DNA of 63,552 nt, filler included, from Heterodontus francisci (taxonomy: Eukaryota): NCBI RefSeq assembly GCF_036365525.1. It is 4 parts of 4 records of this genome, joined end to end, with 100 filler letters (N's around TTAATTAATTAA, not from the genome) between each part and the next. Parts side by side here need not be neighbours in the genome. Positions count along the whole stretch, not along the records: positions 26,365 to 47,344 come from NC_090404.1; 3 more parts are not named here. The stretch is one strand, 5' to 3'. The notes under the pieces were generated by a model. That model saw only the letters and a list, made by a program, of their open reading frames with translations. It was not told the origin of the DNA and did no database searches. Numbering within the stretch: the stretch's first letter is position 1; every line of letters starts with the position of its first letter. The translations under genes and the position numbers were made by a program. Shown here piece after piece: positions 26,365 to 47,344 of this stretch.

Positions 26365-27640
26365 CACTGTACTCAGTCTCATCTTTATCTATCTCTTTCT
26401 GTTGGCCTCTCTCTGTATCACTGTACTCAGTCTCACTTTTATCTATCTCTCTCTGTTGGTCTCTCCCTGTATCACTGTACTCAGTCTCATCTTTATCTAT
26501 CTCTCTCTGTTGGTCCCTCTCTGTATCACTGTACTCAGTCTCATCTTTATCTATCTCTTTCTGTTGGCCTCTCTCTGTATCACTGTACTCAGTCTCATCT
26601 TTATCTATCTCTCTCTGTTGGCCTCTCTCTGTATCACTGTACTCAGTCTCACTTTTATCTATCTCTCTCTGTTGGTCCCTCTCTGTATCACTGTACTCAG
26701 TCTCACTTTTATCTATCTCTCTCTGTTTGTCCCTCTCTGTATCACTGTACTCAGTCTCATCTTTATCTATCTCTTTCTGTTGGCCTCTCTCTGTATCACT
26801 GTACTCAGTCTCATCTTTATCTCTCTCTCTCTGTTGGTCCCTCTCTGTATCACTGTACTCAGTCTCATCTTTATCTATCTCTTTCTGTTGGCCTCTCTCT
26901 GTATCACTGTACTCAGTCTCATCTTTATCTATCTCTCTCTGTTGGTCCCTCTCTGTATCACTGTACTCAGTCTCATCTTTATCTCTCTCTCTCTGTTGGT
27001 CCCTCTCTGTATCACTGTACTCAGTCTCATCTTTATCTATCTCTTTCTGTTGGCCTCTCTCTGTATCACTGTACTCAGTCTCATCTTTATCTATCTCTCT
27101 CTGTTGGCCTCTCTCTGTATCACTGTACTCAGTCTCACTTTTATCTATCTCTCTCTGTTGGTCCCTCTCTGTATCACTGTACTCAGTCTCATCTTTATCT
27201 ATCTCTTTCTGTTGGCCTCTCTCTGTATCACTGTACTCAGTCTCACTTTTATCTATCTCTCTCTGTTGGCCTCTCTCTGTATCACTGTACTCAGTCTCAC
27301 TTTTATCTATCTCTCTCTGTTGGTCCCTCTCTGTATCACTGTACTCAGTCTCACTTTTATCTATCTCTCTCTGTTGGTCTCTCTCTCTGTATCACTGTAC
27401 TCAATCTCACCTTTATCTATCTCACTCTGTTGGTCTCTCGCTGTATCACTGTACTCAGTCTTACCTTTATCTATCTGATTCTGTTGGTCTCTCTCTGTAT
27501 CACTGTACTCAGTCTCATCTTTATCTCTCTCTCTCTGTTGGTCCCTCTCTGTATCACTGTACTCAGTCTCATCTTTATCTATCTCATTCTGTTGGTCTCT
27601 CTCTGAATCAATGTACCCAGTCTCGCCTTCATTTATACAT
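26365..27640. repeat. 54-bp pyrimidine-rich minisatellite, about 23 copies
   Basis: Unit cactgtactcagtctcatctttatctatctctctctgttggcctctctctgtat; gives an 18-aa periodic spurious ORF. Confidence 0.97.
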
Positions 27641-28118
27641 TTCTCTGTGTGACGTCAGTCTGTAGTCTATGTGACGTCAGTCTTCTGTCTGTGTGATGTG
27701 TCTTCTGTCTGTGTGTCGTATCTTCATTCTGTGTGACGTGAGTCTGAAGTTTGCATGACGTCTGTCTGAAGACTTGCCAATGTAGGTTTGAGTGACGTAA
27801 TTGTCAGCGATCTCTTTCTCGGAGCTGATCTGAACGTAATCCCTGATTATGAATTATTAAGCAGTTGATCAGAAGCAGGAAGGACAGTTTAACCGGTAGA
27901 TTGATTCTTTGCTGGATCTGTCTGTCTGATTGGATTCTGCAGTTTGTTTTCTCGGCCGCTCCTGGAAACAGTTGGGTGACAGTTTGATCCATGGTTAATT
28001 TGGTTTCCTCTCGGTGTGTGTTTGAGTGCCTGACAGCGCGCTGCACATTGTGGCTGCATCTGCCCGCGATTCTACACACCTCCCAACAGACAGAAGCTCC
28101 CACCCACAGTCCAACAGC

Positions 28119-28157
28119 TGTTTTTGTACAGGGGTGAGACTGTTTCCCATCACTGCG
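28119..28157 (-). promoter_or_regulatory. Defective 23-RSS (heptamer CGCAGTG, 23-bp spacer, nonamer ACAAAAACA)
   Basis: Spacer counted 28128-28150; the essential CAC is mutated to CGC. Confidence 0.9.
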
Positions 28158-28457
28158 AGTCCCACAGAGAGCACAGTAAGAGTTAATTATCTGCAATTCG
28201 GTCATGGTTAAACTTGCTAAGGAGTCTGAAAGCACGAGTTCTGAAGAGAAACGGATTCCTGTCTCTGCTCTTTTCCATTCCACTCTATCCCAGAACCATC
28301 TCCTCATCACCAACTGGAGTTCCTTCTCTGGTTGCTGTCGGTACCAATATAAATAATACCTGTTTTCAGTGGTCCTATCGATACATCTTATAGTCACTGC
28401 TTCTCCTTCTCTTCCGCTCACTGAAGACTGGGACTGAGTAATCTTAATTACTCTGAT
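28158..28457 (-). pseudogene. TCR alpha/delta-type V exon, pseudogene
   Basis: ITQSQSSVSGREGEAVTIRC..YYLYWYRQQPEK..RFSSEL..SLTMTELQIINSYCAL; the D-x-A-x-Y motif is deleted, the RSS is mutated and the leader is disrupted. Confidence 0.9.
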
Positions 28458-28555
28458 CTGCAACATGTGTTCAGGAAGAAGATAAAGCCGAGTATTAAAA
28501 GGCATCAGTGAAAATAAATGTCATTTCAGTTTGAACACGACAAGATGAGAGCCAT

Positions 28556-29390
28556 AAATTAAAAGAAAAATACTGCGGATGCTGGAAATCTGAAATAAAA
28601 ACAAGAAATGCTGGAAACACTCAGCAGGTCTGGCAGCATCTGTGGAGAGAGAAGTAGAGTTAACATTTCGGGTCAGTGACCCTTCTTCAGAACTGGCAAA
28701 TATTAGAAATGTAAAAGGTTATAAGCAAGTAAAGTGAGGGTGGGGCAAGAGATAACAAAGGAGAAGGTGTAGCTAGGACAAGGTCACAGAATAGCTGACC
28801 AGAAGGTCATGGAGCAAAGATATGTTAATGGTGTGTTGAAAGACAAAGCATTAGTACAGAAAGGGTGTTAATGGACTGAAAATTGGTCAAGTACAAACAT
28901 GAAAAAAACAGTGGGTAAGCAAACTGAACAAACTAAGACGAAATAAAATAAAATAAACATTAAAAAATATATAAAAAAGGAAAAAAGTAACTCAAAATAA
29001 AAGTAAAATGGGGAGCCCGTCATGCTCTGAAATTATTGAACTCAGTGTTCAGTCCGGCAGGCTGTAGCGTGCCAAATCGGTAAATGAGATGCTGTTCTTC
29101 GAGCTTGCATTGATGTTCCCTGGAACTCTGCAGCAATCCCAGGACAGAGATATGAGCATGAGAGCAGGGGGAGTGTTGAAATGGCAAGCAACCGGAAGCT
29201 CGGGGTCCTGTTTGCGGTCTGAGCGGATGTGTTCCGCAAAGCGGTCCCCCAGTCTGCATTTGGTCTCCCCAATGTAGAGGAGACCACATTGTGAGCAGCG
29301 AGTACAGTATACTACATTGAAAGAAGTACTAGTAAATCGCTGCTTCACCTGAAAGGAGTGTTTGGGGCATTGGATAGTGGGTGGATAGTG
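28556..29390 (-). mobile_element. 5'-truncated Penelope-like element (GIY-YIG endonuclease end plus pseudo-LTR), 12-bp TSD
   Basis: NVVYCTRCSQCGLLYIGETKCRLGDRFAEH...PVACHFN; TSD gatgagagccat at 28544-28555 and 29391-29402. Confidence 0.93.
28658..28694 (-). ncRNA. Minimal type I hammerhead ribozyme motif in Penelope pseudo-LTR
   Basis: AGUU-CUGAAGA-A-GGGUC-ACU-GACCC-GAAA-UGUU-AACU: CUGANGA and GAAA cores, 5-bp stem II, 4-bp stem I, GUU cleavage triplet. Confidence 0.75.
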
Positions 29391-29408
29391 GATGAGAGCC
29401 ATCCTTAC

Positions 29409-29424
29409 CGACAGTAAACAGCCC
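29409..29424 (-). pseudogene. 3' half of the split V leader exon (GGG CTG TTT ACT GTC G|GTAAGG)
   Basis: Directly follows the Tx1 poly(A); phase-1 donor at 29408. Confidence 0.85.
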
Positions 29425-32400
29425 TTTTTTATTTCCAAAGTAGACTTCGTTCATAAAAATCTGTAAAAAAAAAAATACATTACAAAATAATTCCAAACAA
29501 CACCAAGTCAAAAAATACAAGAAGTGCAAAGGAGGTCAGTTTCCTTCAATACTGATGTGAGTTGCCTTCCATTTCATTTTTCATGCCACATACATTTTAC
29601 AGCAAATGAAACTTTTCCCGTTACAGTTCAAGGGGTTTCCCATGGATCCAGCCCCTCTGTTCAGCTTGGTGAGGCGGACCTTACACTGTGGTCTTTCCCC
29701 ATTGAGCCTTTGCTGCGGCTGCCCCAAGCTTTAGTGCGTCCCTCAGCACGTAGTCCTGGACCTTGGAATGTGCCAGTCTGCAACATTCGGTGGTGGACAA
29801 CTCTTTGTGCTGGAAGACCAGCAAGTTTCGGGCAGACCAAAGGGCGTCTTTCACCGAATTGATAGTCCTCCAGCAGCAGTTGATGTTTGTCTCGGTGTGC
29901 GTCCCTGGGAACAGCCCTTAGAGCACAGACTCCTGTGTTCCAGAGCTGCTTGGGATGAACCTCGACAAAAACCACTGCATCTCTTTCCACACCTGCTTTG
30001 CAAAGACACATTCCAGAAGGAGGTGGGCAACCATCTCTTCCCCACCACAGCCACCGCGGGGGCATTGCGCAGAGGGGGTGAGACTTCGTGCAGGAAGGAT
30101 CTGACGCGGAGGGCTCTTCTCACCACCAGCCAAGCTACATCTTGGTGCTTGTTTGAAAGTTCTGGTGATGAGGCATTCCGCCAAATGACTTTGACGGTCT
30201 GCTCGGGGAACCATCAGATAGGGTCCACCATCTCCTTTTCCCGTAGGGCCTTGAGGACATTCCGTGCAGACCACTGCCTGAGGGATTGGTGGTCAAAGGT
30301 GTTTTCCCACAGAAACTGCTCCACGAAGGATAGGTGGTACGGCACAGTCTAACTGGATGGAGCGTTCTGTGGCAATATGACCAGGCCCATCCTTCGCAAC
30401 ACTGGGGACAGATAGAACCTCAGCACGTAGTAACACTTGGAGTTTGCATACTGGAGGTCTACACACAGCTTGATGCAGCCACACTCAAAGGTAGTCATCA
30501 GGATGAGGGCGATGTTGGGTACATTTTTCCAGCCCTTATCCAGAGGTTTGAACATCGTGTCCATCTGGATCCGGTCCATTTTGGATCCCCAGATGAAGCG
30601 GAAAATGGCTCGGGTGACCGGCACAGCGCAGGAGTGGGGTATGGGCCAGACCTGCGCCACGTACAGCAACAACGTGAGCGCCTCGCACCTGATGACCAGG
30701 TTCTTACCCACAATGGAGAGAGATCACTGCTTCCATATGCTCAGTTTAGGTCTACCCTGGCTACACGCTCATTCCAGGTTTTGGTGCACGCCCCAGCCCT
30801 TCCAAACCACATCCCCAGCACCTTCAGGTAGTGTGACCTGACGGTGAAGGGGACAAAGGATCGGTCGGCCCAGTTCCCAAAGAACATGGCCTCGCTCTTG
30901 CCGTGGTTAACTTTGGCTCCCGAGGCCAGTTCGAACTGGTCGCAGATGCTCATCAGTCTGCGCACAGACAGCGGATCCGAGCAGAAGACAGTGACGTCAT
31001 CCATGTACAGGGAGGTTTTAACCAGAGTGCCTCCGCTGCCTGGGATTGTCACCCCTCGTATGCTCGCATCCTTCCTAATAGACTCAGCAAAGGGTTCAAT
31101 ACAGCAAACAAATAACACAGGGGTGAGAGGACAGCCCTGTCTGACTCCAGATTGGATCAGGAAACTTTTTGATATTGATTGAGACTGAGCTACTGATGTT
31201 TGTGTAGAGCAGTTTGATCCAATTGCAGAGTCCCTCCCCAAACCCCATTTTGGAAAGCACGTCCATCATGTAGGTGTGCGATATCCTGTCAAAAGCCTTC
31301 TCCTGGTCCAGGCTGATGAGGCAGGTGTCCACCCTTCTGTCCCATACATAGGTGATCGTATCCTTGAGTAGCACGAGACTATCAGAGATCTTCCTGCCGG
31401 GTACAGTACAGGTCTGATCAGGGTGAATCACCAACTCCAGAGCAGACCTGACTCGACTGGCTATGACTTTGGACAGAATCTTGTAGTCGACATGAAGCAC
31501 TGAGATGGGCTGCCAATTTCTGATTTCTGCCCTCTCCCCCTTCCGCTTGTAGATGAGGGTGATGATGCCTTTCCTCATGGATTCTGACATGATGCCAGCC
31601 AGGAGCATACTTTCGTATACTTCCAGCAGGTCCGGGCCGACCCAGTCCCACAGGGCCGAATACAACTCAACTGGTAAGCCGTCGCTTCCGGGAGTTTTAC
31701 TCGTCTCAAAGGACCTGACGGCCTTTGTCAGCTCGTCCAGAGTTAGCGGCTTGTCCAGTCTCTCCCTCGTGCTGTCATCTAAGACCTCTGTGATAGATGA
31801 CAGGAAGGACTGGTAGGCTCTGCTGTCTGTGGGCTTCACGTCATACAGCCCAGCAGAAAAGGATTTGCTGATCCTTAGTATGTCGGACTGCGAAGACGTT
31901 ACCGAGCCATCCTCTTCCTTCAGGCTGCTGATCACAGAGCTCTCTCTGTGTACCTTTCGGAAGAAGTAACGCAAGCACGTCTCATCCTGCTCAATGGAGC
32001 GGACTCTGGACCGGAAGATGATCTTGGAGGCCTCCGTGGCAAAGAGCGAGGCCTGCTGGCTCTTCACCTCATGGAGGTCCTCCTTCACCTCGACCCCCAT
32101 CGACTGCAGCTGGAGCAGATTTTGCATACTTCTCTGGGGTCGGGACATTTCCCTCTGTCTCTCCCTCGCCCTCTGAACATCTTTGAAGATAAAGAACCTC
32201 TTGATGTTCTCCTTGATCACCTCCCACCAGTGAACTGGAGACTCAAAGAGGGGTTTCACGGTCTTCCAACCTTTGTAATCCCTTTTGAGTTCCTCAACGT
32301 TCTTTGGGGTTAGCAGTGTAGCATTGAGCTTCCACGTCCCTCTGCCAGCCCGTTGGTCATCCTGTAAGTGACAGTCGGCCAGTAAGAGGCAAGGGTCAGA

Positions 32401-33029
32401 GAAGAACACCGGCTTGACATCGGTGGATCCGACCGTGACAGCACGGGACACAAACAGGAAATCAATCCTGGAACGGGCAGACCCGTCCGATCTTGACCAT
32501 GTGTATCTGCGCTGCGCTCCGTCTGCAGGTTTGCTGAAGACGTCGTGCAGTTTGGCATCTTTAACTGTTTCTATTAGGAATCTGGATGTAGCGTCCAGTT
32601 TGCTGTCGTCACTGCCGGATCGTAAAGCTGCATCGATGATGCAGTTGAAGTCACCGCCTCGGATGACCGGCCTGAACGTCGCCAGCAGCAGTGGGAGCTG
32701 CTGGAAGACGGTCAGCCGCTCACTGCATTGAACCAGGGTGCACATGTTGATCAACCGGAGCGGAGCGTTGTTGTACATTACATCTGCTACGAGGAGGCGA
32801 CCGCCCACCACCTCCTTAACTTCGGAGATGGTGAAGTTACCTCCCCACAGCAGAATACCCAGGCCAGAGGAACGGCAATCATTACCCCCTGACCAGATCG
32901 ATGGCCCGTGGGACCACCGTCGCAACCATTGCCTATAGGTGCTGAGATGTGGTATTCCACACTCCTGCAGAAACAGTGGGTTGGCTTTTACCTTGGCGAG
33001 GTAATCCAAGGTTGAAACACATCGCGTAG

Positions 33030-33820
33030 TGGCAGCTAACTGCAGCACAGTCGTCTGCAAGAACTGCAAGGAGAAAGGCCATCAGACCAAGGACTGTAAG
33101 CAGAGTAAGTGTTGTAACCTGTGCGGTGCAGCAGGCCACCTCTACAAAACCTGCCCCAAACGCTGCCTCAGTTATGCTCAGGCGGCAAGGTCCAAGGAAA
33201 GGCCGGGAGAAGGAACGACGAAGGCGTCTGGTGCTGGAAAGGAGACAAGCAATCCTCTCCACTGTGAGCAAATTCTACCTGAGAAGGAGAAGAAAGGGGA
33301 GGCAGCTGCAACCAGCGATTCAGCACCTACCCTGTGCCTGGAAACCCCTCCTCCACAGACAGAATCAATGGAGGAGGAGGCAGCAGATGGACAAACAGGT
33401 CAGTGGCAAGCAGTACAAAGGAAAACCACAAAGAAAAAACCTCCAAAAGCGGAACAGCCCTCCTCCCAAACCAATGGTAAGAGGAGGTTACCGTCTGAGA
33501 CAGACTACAGCAGCTCCTCTTCACTGGACGAGGAAGTGCCGGAACGTGGCACCTTCAAAAGAGGCAGCAGAACTCAAAGGAACTGGAAGATAAAGCCCCC
33601 CAGCTCCCGGGCACTGGCAGCTGTGATGGGCCCGGCATGCCCCAAACCCAAAGCGCCAAACCTAGTGACATGGCCAGCGCATCCCAGCTCCGGGACACTG
33701 AGAGCAAAGACAGGTCTGGCACACCTCAGCTCCAGGAAGGTGGGAGTAGTGATGTTTTCAAGGAAGAACAAAGGGGAACAGCAGAGGATAGCCCAATCCT
33801 TGCTGCCTCCAAGACCCCGC
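33030..33820 (+). mobile_element. Inverted ORF1 C-terminal segment (CCHC zinc knuckles) of the Tx1 element
   Basis: CKNCKEKGHQTKDC and CNLCGAAGHLYKTC on the plus strand while the rest of the element is on the minus strand. Confidence 0.9.
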
Positions 33821-34227
33821 CGGCCACCTCGACGTACCTGGCGAGAAAGGTGAGTACATCCACTGCAGGAACATGGGTATTATAGAGGTGAATTGGCACC
33901 ACCCGGTCACATTGTGAGGGCAGCGTGAAGAGCGGCTCCACTGTGAGGATCGACAGCGGCGCCAGGTTCCCTTTCTCCTTGAACACCATCAGGAACTTGA
34001 TGCATCCCGCCACATTCTTGAACATCAAGTCGAAATATCCACTGCTGGGGAAATCCTGCAGGCAGAAGATGTCCGTAGCTTGGAATCCACTGCAATTGAT
34101 GAGGATTTTCTTAATGAAGAAGGTGCGATCAACCAGTGCATCTCCTTCCTTGTCCTTCACTACCAACCGAACGGTCTTGCGCACTCCCTGACCTGAAGCT
34201 CGAAGCCGACCCAGGATCAAAAGCCAC

Positions 34228-34258
34228 TGATCGTGGTTTCTCCCCTGCCAAGTAAGTA
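34228..34258 (-). ncRNA. RNU1: U1 snRNA 5' fragment (about nt 2-32)
   Basis: TACTTACTTGGCAGGGGAGAAACCACGATCA versus vertebrate U1 TACTTACCTGGCAGGGGAGATACCATGATCA: 28/31 identical to the human sequence as recalled. Confidence 0.9.
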
Positions 34259-34305
34259 CTAATAAGAACAGATACTACACTTGATCTTAGCCAAAAGACC
34301 GAGAA
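34258..34305 (-). ncRNA. RNU2: U2 snRNA 5' fragment (about nt 6-53)
   Basis: TTCTCGGTCTTTTGGCTAAGATCAAGTGTAGTATCTGTTCTTATTAGT: 46/48 identical to human U2 as recalled, including the branch-point recognition GTAGTA. Confidence 0.96.
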
Positions 34306-34306
34306 A

Positions 34307-34339
34307 CCCAAACACAACCCAGGCGCTGAATATCCGCAT
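34307..34339 (-). pseudogene. 5' half of the split V leader exon (MRIFSAWVVFG)
   Basis: ATG at 34339; joined to 29409-29421 it gives a 46-nt hydrophobic leader MRIFSAWVVFGLFTV+G. TTTTAAA and TTGCGTCA (CRE-like) lie upstream at 34370-34432. Confidence 0.85.
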
Positions 34340-34796: not shown

Positions 34797-34835
34797 GGTT
34801 TTTGTACAGCGGCAACTGAGTTTTAAAGCACTGTG
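34797..34835 (-). promoter_or_regulatory. Consensus 23-RSS (CACAGTG-23-ACAAAAACC)
   Basis: Heptamer 34829-34835, spacer 34806-34828, nonamer 34797-34805. Confidence 0.97.
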
Positions 34836-35278
34836 CTTCCCAACCCGCAGAAATACACAGCGGTGTCCTGGATTTCCACTCCAGGAATCGTTAAAGGAAA
34901 CTTCTTTTCTGAGTTGGTCTGGTCAGCCTGGAATCTTCCCATGACAAAATCCGCATCCATTTTTCTGCTGTTATCCCGGTACAAAATAAAATGCGGAGCC
35001 TGGTTCGAGTGCTGTCTGTACCAATACAGATAGGGGTCATAGTAGCTTGTTGTGTAAGTACAGTCTATTTTCACACGATCGCCTTCAGCCGCGTCGAGTG
35101 TGGTCTGAGGTTGTGACACCGTATCTGCCCGAATCTCCCCTGAATTAAAAAATAACAGAAGCTTGAATATAATACTGTGTTAGAATGTTTGGTAGCACCA
35201 CATTAGTGCAAACAGATGCAAAACATGACCACACCTACCGAACACCAGCCATAATATAACAAGATGATGGTACGACAT
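34836..35278 (-). CDS. Intact TCR alpha/delta-type V gene segment (leader 35239-35278, V exon 34836-35139)
   Basis: MSYHHLVILWLVF-G|EIRADTVSQPQ..VKIDCTYTTSYYDPYLYWYRQ..GRF..LTI..DTAVYFCGL; GT-AG phase-1 intron of 99 nt; perfect 23-RSS. Confidence 0.92.
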
Positions 35279-36529: not shown

Positions 36530-36705
36530 GCAGTCGATTGAGACACCAGCGTGTTCACACGGGGGAGAGGCCATTTACTTGTTCTGTGTGTGGGAAGGGA
36601 TTTGTCATTTCAACCAAGCTGCTGAGGCACCAGCGAGTTCACCAATGACTGCAGGGGTTGGATTCTGCTCTTGTTGCTGCTGTTAATCACATCCAGAACT
36701 AAATC
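36530..36705 (+). pseudogene. C2H2 zinc-finger gene 3' relic
   Basis: [29 protein letters not shown] plus a 3' tail matching the reverse of 44245-44330. Confidence 0.8.
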
Positions 36706-39094: not shown

Positions 39095-42000
39095 ACAAGA
39101 TCACAAATAGAAGTAGACCATATGGCCGATTGAGCCTGTTCCGCGATTTAATACGATCATGGCTGATCTTGGGCTTCAATTCCACTTTCCTGCCCACTCC
39201 CCATATCCCTTGTTTCCCTGCGAGACCAAAATTCTATCTATCCCAGAATTAAATGTATTCGATGATGGAGCATCCACAACCCTCTGGGGTAGAGGGTAGA
39301 TTGGCCCCTTATCCTGAGACTGTACCCCCGTGTTCTAGATTCCCTGACCAGTGGAAACAATTTCTCAGCTTCTACCCTATCAAGCCCTTTCAGAATCCTG
39401 TCTGTCTCAGTTAGATCACTTCTCATTCTTCTAAACTCCAGAGAATATAGGCCCAATTTACTCAGCTTTTCATCATAGGCCAAACCCCTATCCCAGGGAC
39501 CAATTTAGTAAATCTTCGCTGCACTGCCTCCAGTGCAAGTATATCCTTTCTTAAATGTGGAGACCAAAACTGCACACAGTATTCCAGGTGAGGTCTCACC
39601 AAAGCCCTGTACAAATTTAGTAAGACTTCTTTATTCCTGTACTCCAATCCCCTTGCAATAAAGGCCAACATACCATTTGCCTTCCTAACAGCCTGCTGCA
39701 CCTGCATGTTAACTTTGTGCATTCCTTGTACGAGTACCCCCAAGTCTCTCTGAACATCAACTTACTATTTTCACACCTCGTAAAAAATATTTTGCTTTTC
39801 TATTTTTACAACCAAAGTGAACAACTTCACACTTCCCTACATTATACCCCATTTGCCATCTTGTTGCCCATTCACTTAACCTGTCTATATCTCTTTGCAG
39901 CCTCTCTACATCCTCCCTGCAGCTTACCTTTCCACCGAGCTTTTTGTTATCAGAAAACGTAGATACATTACTCTCTGTCATTTCATCCAAGTCATTAATA
40001 TAGAGTGTAAATAGTTGAGGCCCCAGCACTGATCCTTGCGGCACCCCACTATTCACTGCCGGCCAACTTGAAAATGCCTCATGTATGCCCCCTCTCTGCT
40101 TCCTGTCTGTTAACCAATCCTCTATCCATGCTAATATATTACCCCCAACACCATGAGCCCTTATCTTGCCTATTAATCTTTTATGTGGTACATTATCGAA
40201 CGCCTTTTGAAAATCCAGGTATACTACATCTATTGGTTCGCCTTTATCTACCCTACTAGTTATATCCTCAAATAACCTCTAATAAATTTGTCAAACAGGA
40301 TCTCCCTTTACTAATACCATACTGACTTGCTCTAATCGTACTTTTCTTTTCTAAGTGCAACGTTAAGACTTCTTTAATAATAGTTTCCAGTATCTTTCCA
40401 ACGACTGATGTTAGGCTAACTGGCCTGTTCTTCCCTGTTTTCCTTCTACCTCCTTTCTTGAAAAGCGGCATAACATTTGCCAACTTCCAATCTAACCGGA
40501 CCACTCCTGAATCTAAGGAATTCTGGAAAATCATAGCCAGCGCATCCACTATCTCTGCAGCTATCTCTTTTAGAACCCTAGGATGTAGGCTATCTGGTCC
40601 TGGGGACTTGTCAGATTTTAGTCCCTCAAGTTTCTCCAATACTTTTTCTCGGCTGCTATCAATATCCTTAATTTCCTCACTTTTTAGCCCCTGGGTTACT
40701 GCCTATTTCTGGTATGGAACTTGTGTCTTCTATTGTGAAGACTTGCACAACATTTTTGTTCAATGCCTCTGCCATTTCCTCATTCCCTATGATAATTTCT
40801 CCTGTCTCCACCTCTAAGGGATCAACGTCTACATTAACTCCTCACTTCCTATTTATGTACTTATAAAAGTTCTTACAATCTGTTTTTATATTGCTGGCTA
40901 GTTTACTGTCATTCTATTTTTTTCCCGTTTTTATCAACTATTTGGTGGATCTTTGATGGTTTCTAAAACATTCCCAATCCTCAGACTTGCTACTATTTTT
41001 TGCAACATTGTACACTTTTAGTCTAATACTCTCCTTAAATTCCTGAGTGAGCCACAGATGGGTCTTTCTTGACGAGTTTTTGCTTTTGAGCGGAACGTAT
41101 TTCTGTCGAACCCCTTGAATCATTTCTTTAAATTTTTCCCACTGTTCATTTACTGCCATTCCTTCTAGTCTATTTACCTAATTAACCTTAACCCGTTCTC
41201 CCCTCATACCTTCGTAATTGGTTTTGTTTAAGTTTAAGATTCAATTGAAATGTGTCACTTTCAAACTTAACATGAAATTCAATGGTATAATGATCACTAT
41301 TTACCAGTGGATCTTTTACTATGACATAGCTTATTAACCTTACTTCATTACACAATACGAGATCTAAGATAGCTTTATCCCGAGTCGGTTCCACAACGTA
41401 TTGCTCCAAGAAACTGTCATGAAAGCATTCTACAAATTAATCTTCCAGACCACTGTTGCCAATTTGATTGTCCCAGTCTATATGCAGATTAAAGTTCCCT
41501 ACAATTAATACATTACCTTTTTTTAACATGCTTCAATAATTTCCCATTTAATATTCTGTCCAATAATATAACTACTATTTGGGGGCTTGTAAAACTACTC
41601 TCACCGATGTTTTTTGACTTCTGCTATTCCTAATTTCCACCCAAACTGAATCGACATTATGATCTTCTGAGGCTAGATCCCTTCTTAATAATGCCATGTC
41701 ATCCTTCACTATCAGGGCTACCCCTCCTCCTTTGCCATTCTGTCTGTCTTTCCAAAATACTGTGTATCCTGGAATATTCATTTCCCACCCTTGATCTCCT
41801 TGTAACCATGTCTCAATAATGGCAATTAGATCTGTATCATTTACTTCTATCTGTGCCACTAGTTTATCTATTTTACTACAGATGCTTCTTGCATTCAGAT
41901 AAAGGAACTTTAATTTCATTTTTTTTTACCTCTATTCCCTGCAATGACCTAATTTACCAATGTACAATTTTTTGTTAAACTCTCTGTCCCTTCCTGTCCC

Positions 42001-44417: not shown

Positions 44418-45790
<1,373 letters not shown>

Positions 45791-46760: not shown

Positions 46761-47344
46761 AATAGGGCACATTCACTTTGCAGCGAATGCTGGGTAACAG
46801 ATCCCCCATGGTGATCGGAAACGAATTCTCTGTGATCCTATTAAGGTGAACGTAATGAAGAATTCACACAGAAACCCAAGTTCAAGGGCCTTCCGCTATG
46901 CACCACTCCCAGCAGAATCCAATCCTGAAGTTTACAGGTGAACTCGCTGGTGTCTCAGCAATTGGGGTTAAATTCTTCCCACAGACAGAATATGTGAACA
47001 ACATCTCTTCACTGTGAGAATGCGCTGATCAGCTGCTTTAAAATTTAGAAGATTTTCTCTCAGTCATAAGAGTTGCTTTGAACACACTCTAAGGTGGAAA
47101 ACACTCCCAAGACTGGTACAACACGGGTTAGATACAGAGTCCTGTATCTACACTGTCCTGCGAATCACACTCAGGGCAGTTACAGCACAGATTAGATACA
47201 GAGTAAAGCTTCCTCTACACTAGGGTTGTCCAACATATGGCCGAGGTTTCTGTCCAGCCCACGGATGTATTTCAGAGATGAGAAATTTTCCATTGTCTTC
47301 TTTCAGACCAGCTGTCTTTAAAAAAAAAATTGTGCTGTCAGTTT

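Follow-up and report, generated by a model that had tools for sequence, protein, structure and literature searches.

In a window of 63,552 nucleotides of DNA from the shark Heterodontus francisci (filler included), we have found a Tx1-type LINE whose 5' end consists of a piece of U2 snRNA stacked directly on a piece of U1 snRNA. The U1 piece in turn reaches the start of ORF1. The element spans 34306-29425 on the minus strand (4,882 nt), within the 21-kb piece of the window that comes from NC_090404.1; Pfam and tblastn recover both of its open reading frames, in agreement with the Tx1-type element of about 4.9 kb reported by a first-pass annotation of this DNA. What is new is that, in a shark, an element of coding type carries U2 stacked on U1 and has no other leader in front of its start codon. 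The principle of an snRNA-headed Tx1 element is not new, and the novelty is smaller than the first-pass annotation implied. The features are collected in Table 1.

Table 1. Features of the snRNA-headed Tx1 copy and its host exon (positions in the window).
Feature	Position	Strand	Details and basis
Host leader exon, 5' part	34307..34339	-	ATG 34339-34337, end GGG 34309-34307
U2-derived head piece	34259..34306	-	U2 nt 5-52, three C>T differences; Rfam U2 and sequence reading
U1-derived head piece	34219..34258	-	U1 nt 2-45; sequence reading against textbook U1
ORF1, N-terminal part	33807..34220	-	Pfam, tblastn, alignment of the relatives' Met
Inverted segment, ORF1 C-terminal half	33029..33853	+	tblastn, translation, Pfam zinc knuckles
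ORF2	29683..33027	-	AP endonuclease, reverse transcriptase, C-terminal zinc-binding region; Pfam, tblastn
3' UTR	29425..29682	-	Sequence; ends with AATAAA and a run of six A, all that remains of a possible poly(A) tail
Host 3' flank	29407..29424	-	GGG, leader remainder 29421-29409, splice donor GT 29408-29407

The snRNA head and the coding regions

The U2 piece was detected with Rfam as a match to RF00004 at 34194-34310 on the minus strand, with 47.5 bits (gathering score 46) and an E value of 7.6e-07, the true alignment being limited to model positions ~5-49. The U1 piece was read against the textbook vertebrate U1 5' sequence. Positions 34258-34228 correspond to U1 nt 2-32 with 3 substitutions and adjoin the U2 piece with zero spacer, while GTGG(C)TTTT beyond a 5-nt gap corresponds to U1 nt 38-45; besides these substitutions, the U1 piece departs from the reference by the loss of 5 nt in a loop and the gain of 1 nt. 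Rfam gave no U1 match on 34150-34256 alone, which is expected for a fragment of 40 nt. A match to U1 over 31 nt with 3 mismatches lies well outside what chance would give in 21 kb. The Rfam score and the direct reading of U1 thus agree with the first-pass description of a U2-then-U1 head without spacer, and the GTGG(C)TTTT block bears out its suggestion that the U1 match resumes past a 5-nt loop deletion. Both pieces begin near the 5' end of their snRNA (U2 nt 5, U1 nt 2) and have their 3' sides cut off. We have seen no second headed copy within the 21-kb piece. A hairpin in the U1 piece was also considered as a notable structure and was rejected (z-score -0.92).

The N-terminal part of ORF1 contains the first ZCCHC3-type RNA-binding domain (PF23057, 7.8e-17) and the start of a second (PF23058). 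Aligned relatives (whale-shark, carpet-shark-like, ray and others) have their initiator Met opposite TTG 34220-34218, a codon that shares the final T's of the U1 piece. That is, the ORF1 start position abuts or lies inside the U1 piece, and therefore the entire 5' UTR is snRNA-derived. The first-pass annotation had let ORF1 begin about 30 nt after the head, and this position has to be moved up to the U1 piece itself.

A second correction is that the element is not collinear. Opposite-frame tblastn matches of the homologous proteins P0026, P0031, P0001 and P0029 define an inverted segment, also seen by translation and Pfam, which carries the C-terminal half of ORF1, i.e., CCHC zinc knuckles (below the Pfam cut-offs) and the tail. 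The ORF1 architecture of RRM-like RNA-binding domains plus CCHC knuckles is intact in the shark relative P0129. About 59 residues of ORF1 (~195-253) have been lost at one inversion breakpoint, and the first ~16 residues of ORF2 are unrecognisable and have been lost at the other, sense ORF2 resuming at ~33027. As an observation in itself, this inversion of ~0.8 kb differs from the classical twin-priming layout, in that sense sequence flanks it on both sides.

For ORF2, Pfam reports RVT_1 (6e-15 and 1.6e-14), together with matches below the cut-off to Exo_endo_phos (6.7e-4) and, weakly, to zf-RVT at the C-terminus. According to the tblastn frames, the reading frame changes near 31160, 30755 and 30100, that is, by at least three frameshifts, before the stop at 29685-29683. 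ORF2 is 42-43% identical over ~620 aa to salamander APE-RT proteins with PF03372, PF14529 and PF00078, while with shorter fragments from sharks and rays the identity is as high as 56-76%. By the domain architecture of ORF1 and ORF2, the element is a Tx1-type LINE of the L1 group, and it appears to be related to the Keno elements, which target U2 genes. An atlas search returned generic names only and no clade name for it. Since half of ORF1 is inverted and ORF2 is frameshifted, the copy is dead. A reverse-transcriptase fragment at 39988-40666 (-) was examined as a further Tx1 copy and set aside; it belongs to a different LINE, with 24-30% identity to ORF2 and no head.

Insertion boundaries and the V-gene host

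The element is flanked on its 5' side by ATG CGG ... GTG TTT GGG, which translates as MRIFSAWVVFG, and on its 3' side by GGG CTG TTT ACT GTC G followed by gtaagg. Joined, with GGG counted once, the two flanks make up a V-gene leader exon that is 15 codons long and in phase 1; the leader of the neighbouring V gene is similar in layout (MSYHHLVILWLVF, then gtaggt). As the flanks rebuild one leader exon, with the phase seen in the neighbouring V gene, the U2-U1-LINE unit entered as a single insertion, and the first-pass claim that the head lies inside the insertion boundaries stands. On the evidence of these flanks, the U2 piece at this locus is a part of the insertion and not a target gene. The GGG, which is found at 34309-34307 and again in the 3' flank, is possibly a 3-bp target duplication, consistent with the exon phase. 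A degenerate target duplication of 12-13 bp was considered and rejected for its many mismatches.

The element sits in a cluster of antigen-receptor V genes, with V-set domains on the same strand at 34823-35119 and 27804-28505. According to PDB matches, both segments are light-chain or TCR alpha/delta-like. The segment at 34823-35119 has an intact leader at 35277-35238. The segment at 27804-28505 has no clean YxC motif and its leader is split by the LINE, and it is probably a pseudogene. Taken alone, then, the locus holds a dead insertion that disabled one V gene. The leader intron of the split V gene also contains a Penelope-like fragment at 29049-29400 (-) with a GIY-YIG motif (Pfam E 0.0058, below the cut-off), and the 5' part of this gene has thus received two retroelements.

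Other features were observed in the same piece of the window. A tandem array with a 54-bp unit occupies 26365-27750, with more than 20 copies at 80-98% identity, and reaches the edge of the piece. At 44468-45790 (-) there is an open frame of 440 aa with ~14 C2H2 zinc fingers and an 84-bp period; pieces related to it are found at 36539-36700 and 46910-46973, and of the shorter zinc-finger fragments elsewhere in the piece some are in inverted orientation.

Traces of related heads in other species, and known systems

ORF1 homologues were taken from an exhaustive HMMER search and then scanned for translated snRNA traces. The query peptide, LLGLLA(K/N)IKC, is based on the translation of Rfam U2 consensus positions 5-34 in one frame (LLGLLAKIKC). 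Traces of this kind are at the protein level and depend on gene models, and an NCBI model may be spliced. With this reading in mind, the basking-shark protein P0026 (Cetorhinus maximus, XP_078387188.1) has the U2 peptide upstream of its ORF1 domain with 9 of 10 residues identical, a score that none of 20000 composition-preserving shuffles reached. Two ENA proteins, P0111 and P0133, have the peptide at the same side of the ORF1 domain with all 10 residues identical. In Xenopus laevis P0076 (XP_041430624.1), IASRPFG..IKWS corresponds to U2 nt 1-37 in two frames, and the Met of ORF1 comes 5 codons later. Since frogs are among the reported hosts of Keno, whose insertion site lies 37 nt into U2, this protein looks like a Keno residing in its U2 target gene.

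The U2 part of P0026 stops at about nt 37; next comes RGDTM, which corresponds to U1 nt 14-28 in one frame. After it the same protein has VLPRQGR, corresponding to the U1 5' end in the reading frame which at the Heterodontus locus yields VLTWQGR; the distance to the conserved TVR motif is 18 codons in P0026 and 21 codons in the Heterodontus copy. Shuffle tests of the U1 peptides of P0026 gave 44/5000 and 14/2000, which are modest statistics. In addition, residues 1-30 of P0026, upstream of the U2-like peptide, contain ..SAFF.. and ..FLSFSS.... These may represent additional incomplete copies of the U2 5' end (a TTCTCG stutter), in which case 5' additions would have taken place repeatedly. Two other candidates for U1 traces were discarded: the spacer of P0111 is not significantly U1-like (2129/5000 shuffles), and a U1 origin for the N-terminal end of ORF1 in the shark relatives (M..PGQG) scored at noise level.

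Overall, these protein traces suggest that a U1 piece beside ORF1 is common to shark relatives, with differing pieces stacked above it. They also suggest that the head is a trait of a lineage, and make a purely local accident less likely. The first-pass annotation had likewise preferred a lineage to a one-off event. The anatomy on which it relied, U2, U1 and ORF1 on a Tx1-type element, has been verified here, and the lineage itself is favoured, rather than established, by the peptides of U2 and U1 origin that precede homologous ORF1s. We have observed no relatives of the element in metagenome contigs or viral contigs, and homologous-protein searches with the ORF1 fragment and with P0026 returned almost nothing.

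Coding snRNA-headed elements have been described in crocodilians. Kojima (2015) reported Tx1-Mar families with a U1 head (Tx1-2_Crp, Tx1-2B_Crp, Tx1-4_AMi) and one with a U2 head (Tx1-11_Crp), and the headed families cluster with Keno (PMC4494074). Like the shark element, these are coding, Keno-related Tx1-type LINEs with a U1/U2 5' fragment as their 5' end. Unlike it, they have a single head and are described only in crocodilians, whereas the shark element has U2 stacked on U1, its U1 piece abuts the ORF1 start, and its insertion lies outside Mariner-N4. In the same work, SINEU-1 subfamilies show recurrent, stacked U1/U2 additions with variable end points, for which template switching was favoured, and no SINEU was found outside crocodilians (PMC4494074). 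SINEU elements thus resemble the shark element in having stacked, recurrently added U1/U2 5' fragments on the 5' end of a retroposon and no evident internal promoter, but they are short and non-coding, and in SINEU-2 the order is U1 upstream of U2, opposite to that in the shark. With the snRNA-headed Tx1 and SINEU elements alike, then, the shark element shares a 5' end taken from the 5' region of U1 or U2.

Keno is the U2 snRNA gene-specific Tx1 element of Kojima and Fujiwara (2004), as cited in PMC6136364 and PMC4640811. The shark element has in common with it the Tx1-type architecture and may also resemble it in the U2 5' sequence ahead of ORF1, which in Xenopus P0076 lies directly upstream. 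However, as far as these citing papers describe it, the U2 sequence at Keno is the target gene itself, with nt 1-37 before the element and the rest of U2 after its 3' end. In the shark, the element brought U2 nt 5-52 along when it entered a V gene. A U2 5' part is present upstream, but inside the insertion and reaching nt 52 instead of 37, and the 3' flank is the V leader exon (GGGCTGTTTACTGTCG), with no U2 sequence, instead of the TCTGTTCTTATCAG that follows Keno.

A further comparison is with the chimeric U6-L1 retrocopies mediated by L1, where the 5' part of an snRNA is likewise fused to a LINE, there by template switching, and target sequence flanks the whole. As they are characterised where PMC4494074 cites Buzdin 2002 and Garcia-Perez 2007, those copies are one-off and dead, with the LINE randomly truncated. 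By contrast, the junction in the shark keeps the complete start of ORF1, and traces of similar heads occur in relatives from other species.

The first-pass account of known work was therefore incomplete, as coding Tx1 elements headed by U1 or U2 and stacked SINEU-1 heads had been described in 2015 (PMC4494074). That it was aware of no double-headed coding element in cartilaginous fish does agree with our literature search, which, with Repbase and Dfam outside its scope, found nothing on snRNA-headed LINEs in these animals. Were the head a trait of the family, Tx1 LINEs headed by snRNA would not be restricted to crocodilians, and the Keno-related lineage would have carried such heads since early times or acquired them repeatedly, with a history extending to cartilaginous fish.

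Origin of the stacked head

We tentatively prefer the explanation that the head was inherited from a source element in which it had been built by serial capture of snRNA through template switching, and we place its chance somewhat below even. The RNA of such a source would have begun with U2 nt 5-52, followed by U1 nt 2-45 and the ORF1 start codon, with no conventional 5' UTR. On reaching the 5' end of the LINE RNA, the reverse transcriptase would switch onto an abundant nuclear snRNA and copy it to its 5' end; U1 would have been captured first, and U2 later onto the already U1-headed RNA. Chimeras that retained a complete ORF1 could serve as new source elements. Their transcription would start from promoters upstream of the sites of the source copies, and an upstream promoter would be needed because the head has no known promoter of its own, the U1 and U2 genes using external promoters.

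That the head came from a source element, that U1 was captured before U2 and that template switching was at work are what we infer. The crocodilian headed families and the stacked additions on SINEU-1 give this a precedent (PMC4494074). The snRNA 5' ends are kept and the 3' sides are cut, as expected if the cDNA runs to the snRNA 5' end. The order of U1 before U2 fits both the geometry of the head and the basking-shark relative, a fit that falls short of proof. In addition, a propagating element is favoured by the position of the U1 junction exactly at the ORF1 start, where a randomly truncated one-off would rarely break and where selection on a propagating element would preserve the junction.

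Next in rank stands the model of the first-pass annotation, which we consider possible but unlikely. According to it, the U2 piece is a 5' transduction: a U1-headed source element resides inside a U2 gene and is transcribed from the external U2 promoter, its RNA starts at U2 +1, and off-target copies carry the upstream part of U2 with them. This would agree with the insertion of Keno 37 nt into U2, as given in the citing papers above (PMC6136364; PMC4640811), and with the clustering of the crocodilian headed families with Keno (PMC4494074). Moreover, the arrangement in P0076, with Met 5 codons after U2 nt 1-37, makes Keno seem almost without a 5' UTR of its own, and the U2 part of P0026 also stops at about nt 37; as far as such protein traces can tell, U2 pieces that end near the Keno site in two relatives are more easily reconciled with read-through from a U2 gene than with template switching at random. 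The V-leader target even resembles U2 around the Keno site at 12 of 20 positions, a weakly suggestive likeness that 341 of 20000 random 20-mers also reach; the U2 numbering in this comparison is off by one. On the other hand, the U2 piece of the shark continues to nt 52 and takes in 14 nt beyond the Keno nick, where the Keno 3' target sequence lies; this calls for either another insertion site or a target duplication of 14 bp, and the latter is absent in the Xenopus copy. Also, no U1-targeting Tx1 is known that could account for the U1 piece, the stacked partial pieces of P0026 are left unexplained by residence in a target gene, and the shark copy is followed by the V leader instead of U2.

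We regard as less probable still that the head arose once, at this insertion, when the reverse transcriptase jumped from LINE RNA to U1 and from U1 to U2, as in the L1-U6 retrocopies, so that there would be no headed family. Chimeras of this type made by L1 are well known (reviewed in PMC4494074), and a second copy was not found in the 21-kb piece. The internal inversion, reflecting either a messy integration or later history, is a further sign of irregularity; it speaks against inheritance to the extent that it makes a one-off less unlikely. Yet the U1 junction is no random truncation point, two successive jumps in one event should be rarer than one, and the peptides encoded by U2 and U1 lie upstream of homologous ORF1s in other species. 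A chance resemblance, or an assembly artefact joining snRNA reads to a LINE, is very improbable. Nothing specific points to it except that the runs that cover this stretch include only about half of its sampled words, while the U2 score exceeds the Rfam gathering threshold, the host exon is exactly rebuilt across the insertion, and the snRNA pieces have diverged as in old genomic DNA. Serial template switching is therefore ranked above read-through from a U2 gene, and the latter above a one-off chimera.

Such a family trait would sharpen the question raised by SINEU of how elements are transcribed whose 5' ends derive from externally promoted genes. A lineage with an all-snRNA leader makes a good test case for whether residence in a U2 gene supplies the promoter. 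A bolder proposal, which we consider improbable, is that a Keno-related lineage of elasmobranchs has no 5' UTR or promoter of its own, that its sources sit in U2 genes and depend on the external, snRNA-type pol II promoter there, that its leader consists of U2 and U1, and that in some members an AUG of U1 may start ORF1. The AUG meant is U1 nt 26-28 with the codons that follow, and the basking-shark relative would be an example of such a member. If true, a retrotransposon that encodes proteins would be driven by the promoter of an snRNA, and snRNA sequence would have been co-opted for its translation.

Finally, some gene models of other sharks join the N-terminal domain of Tx1 ORF1 to unrelated proteins. 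P0035 (Carcharodon carcharias, XP_041071580.1) joins it to a hyaluronidase-5-like protein, and P0034/P0134 (Mustelus asterias) join it to PRDM7-like zinc-finger proteins. These fusions are either exonisations of a LINE 5' end or annotation artefacts.
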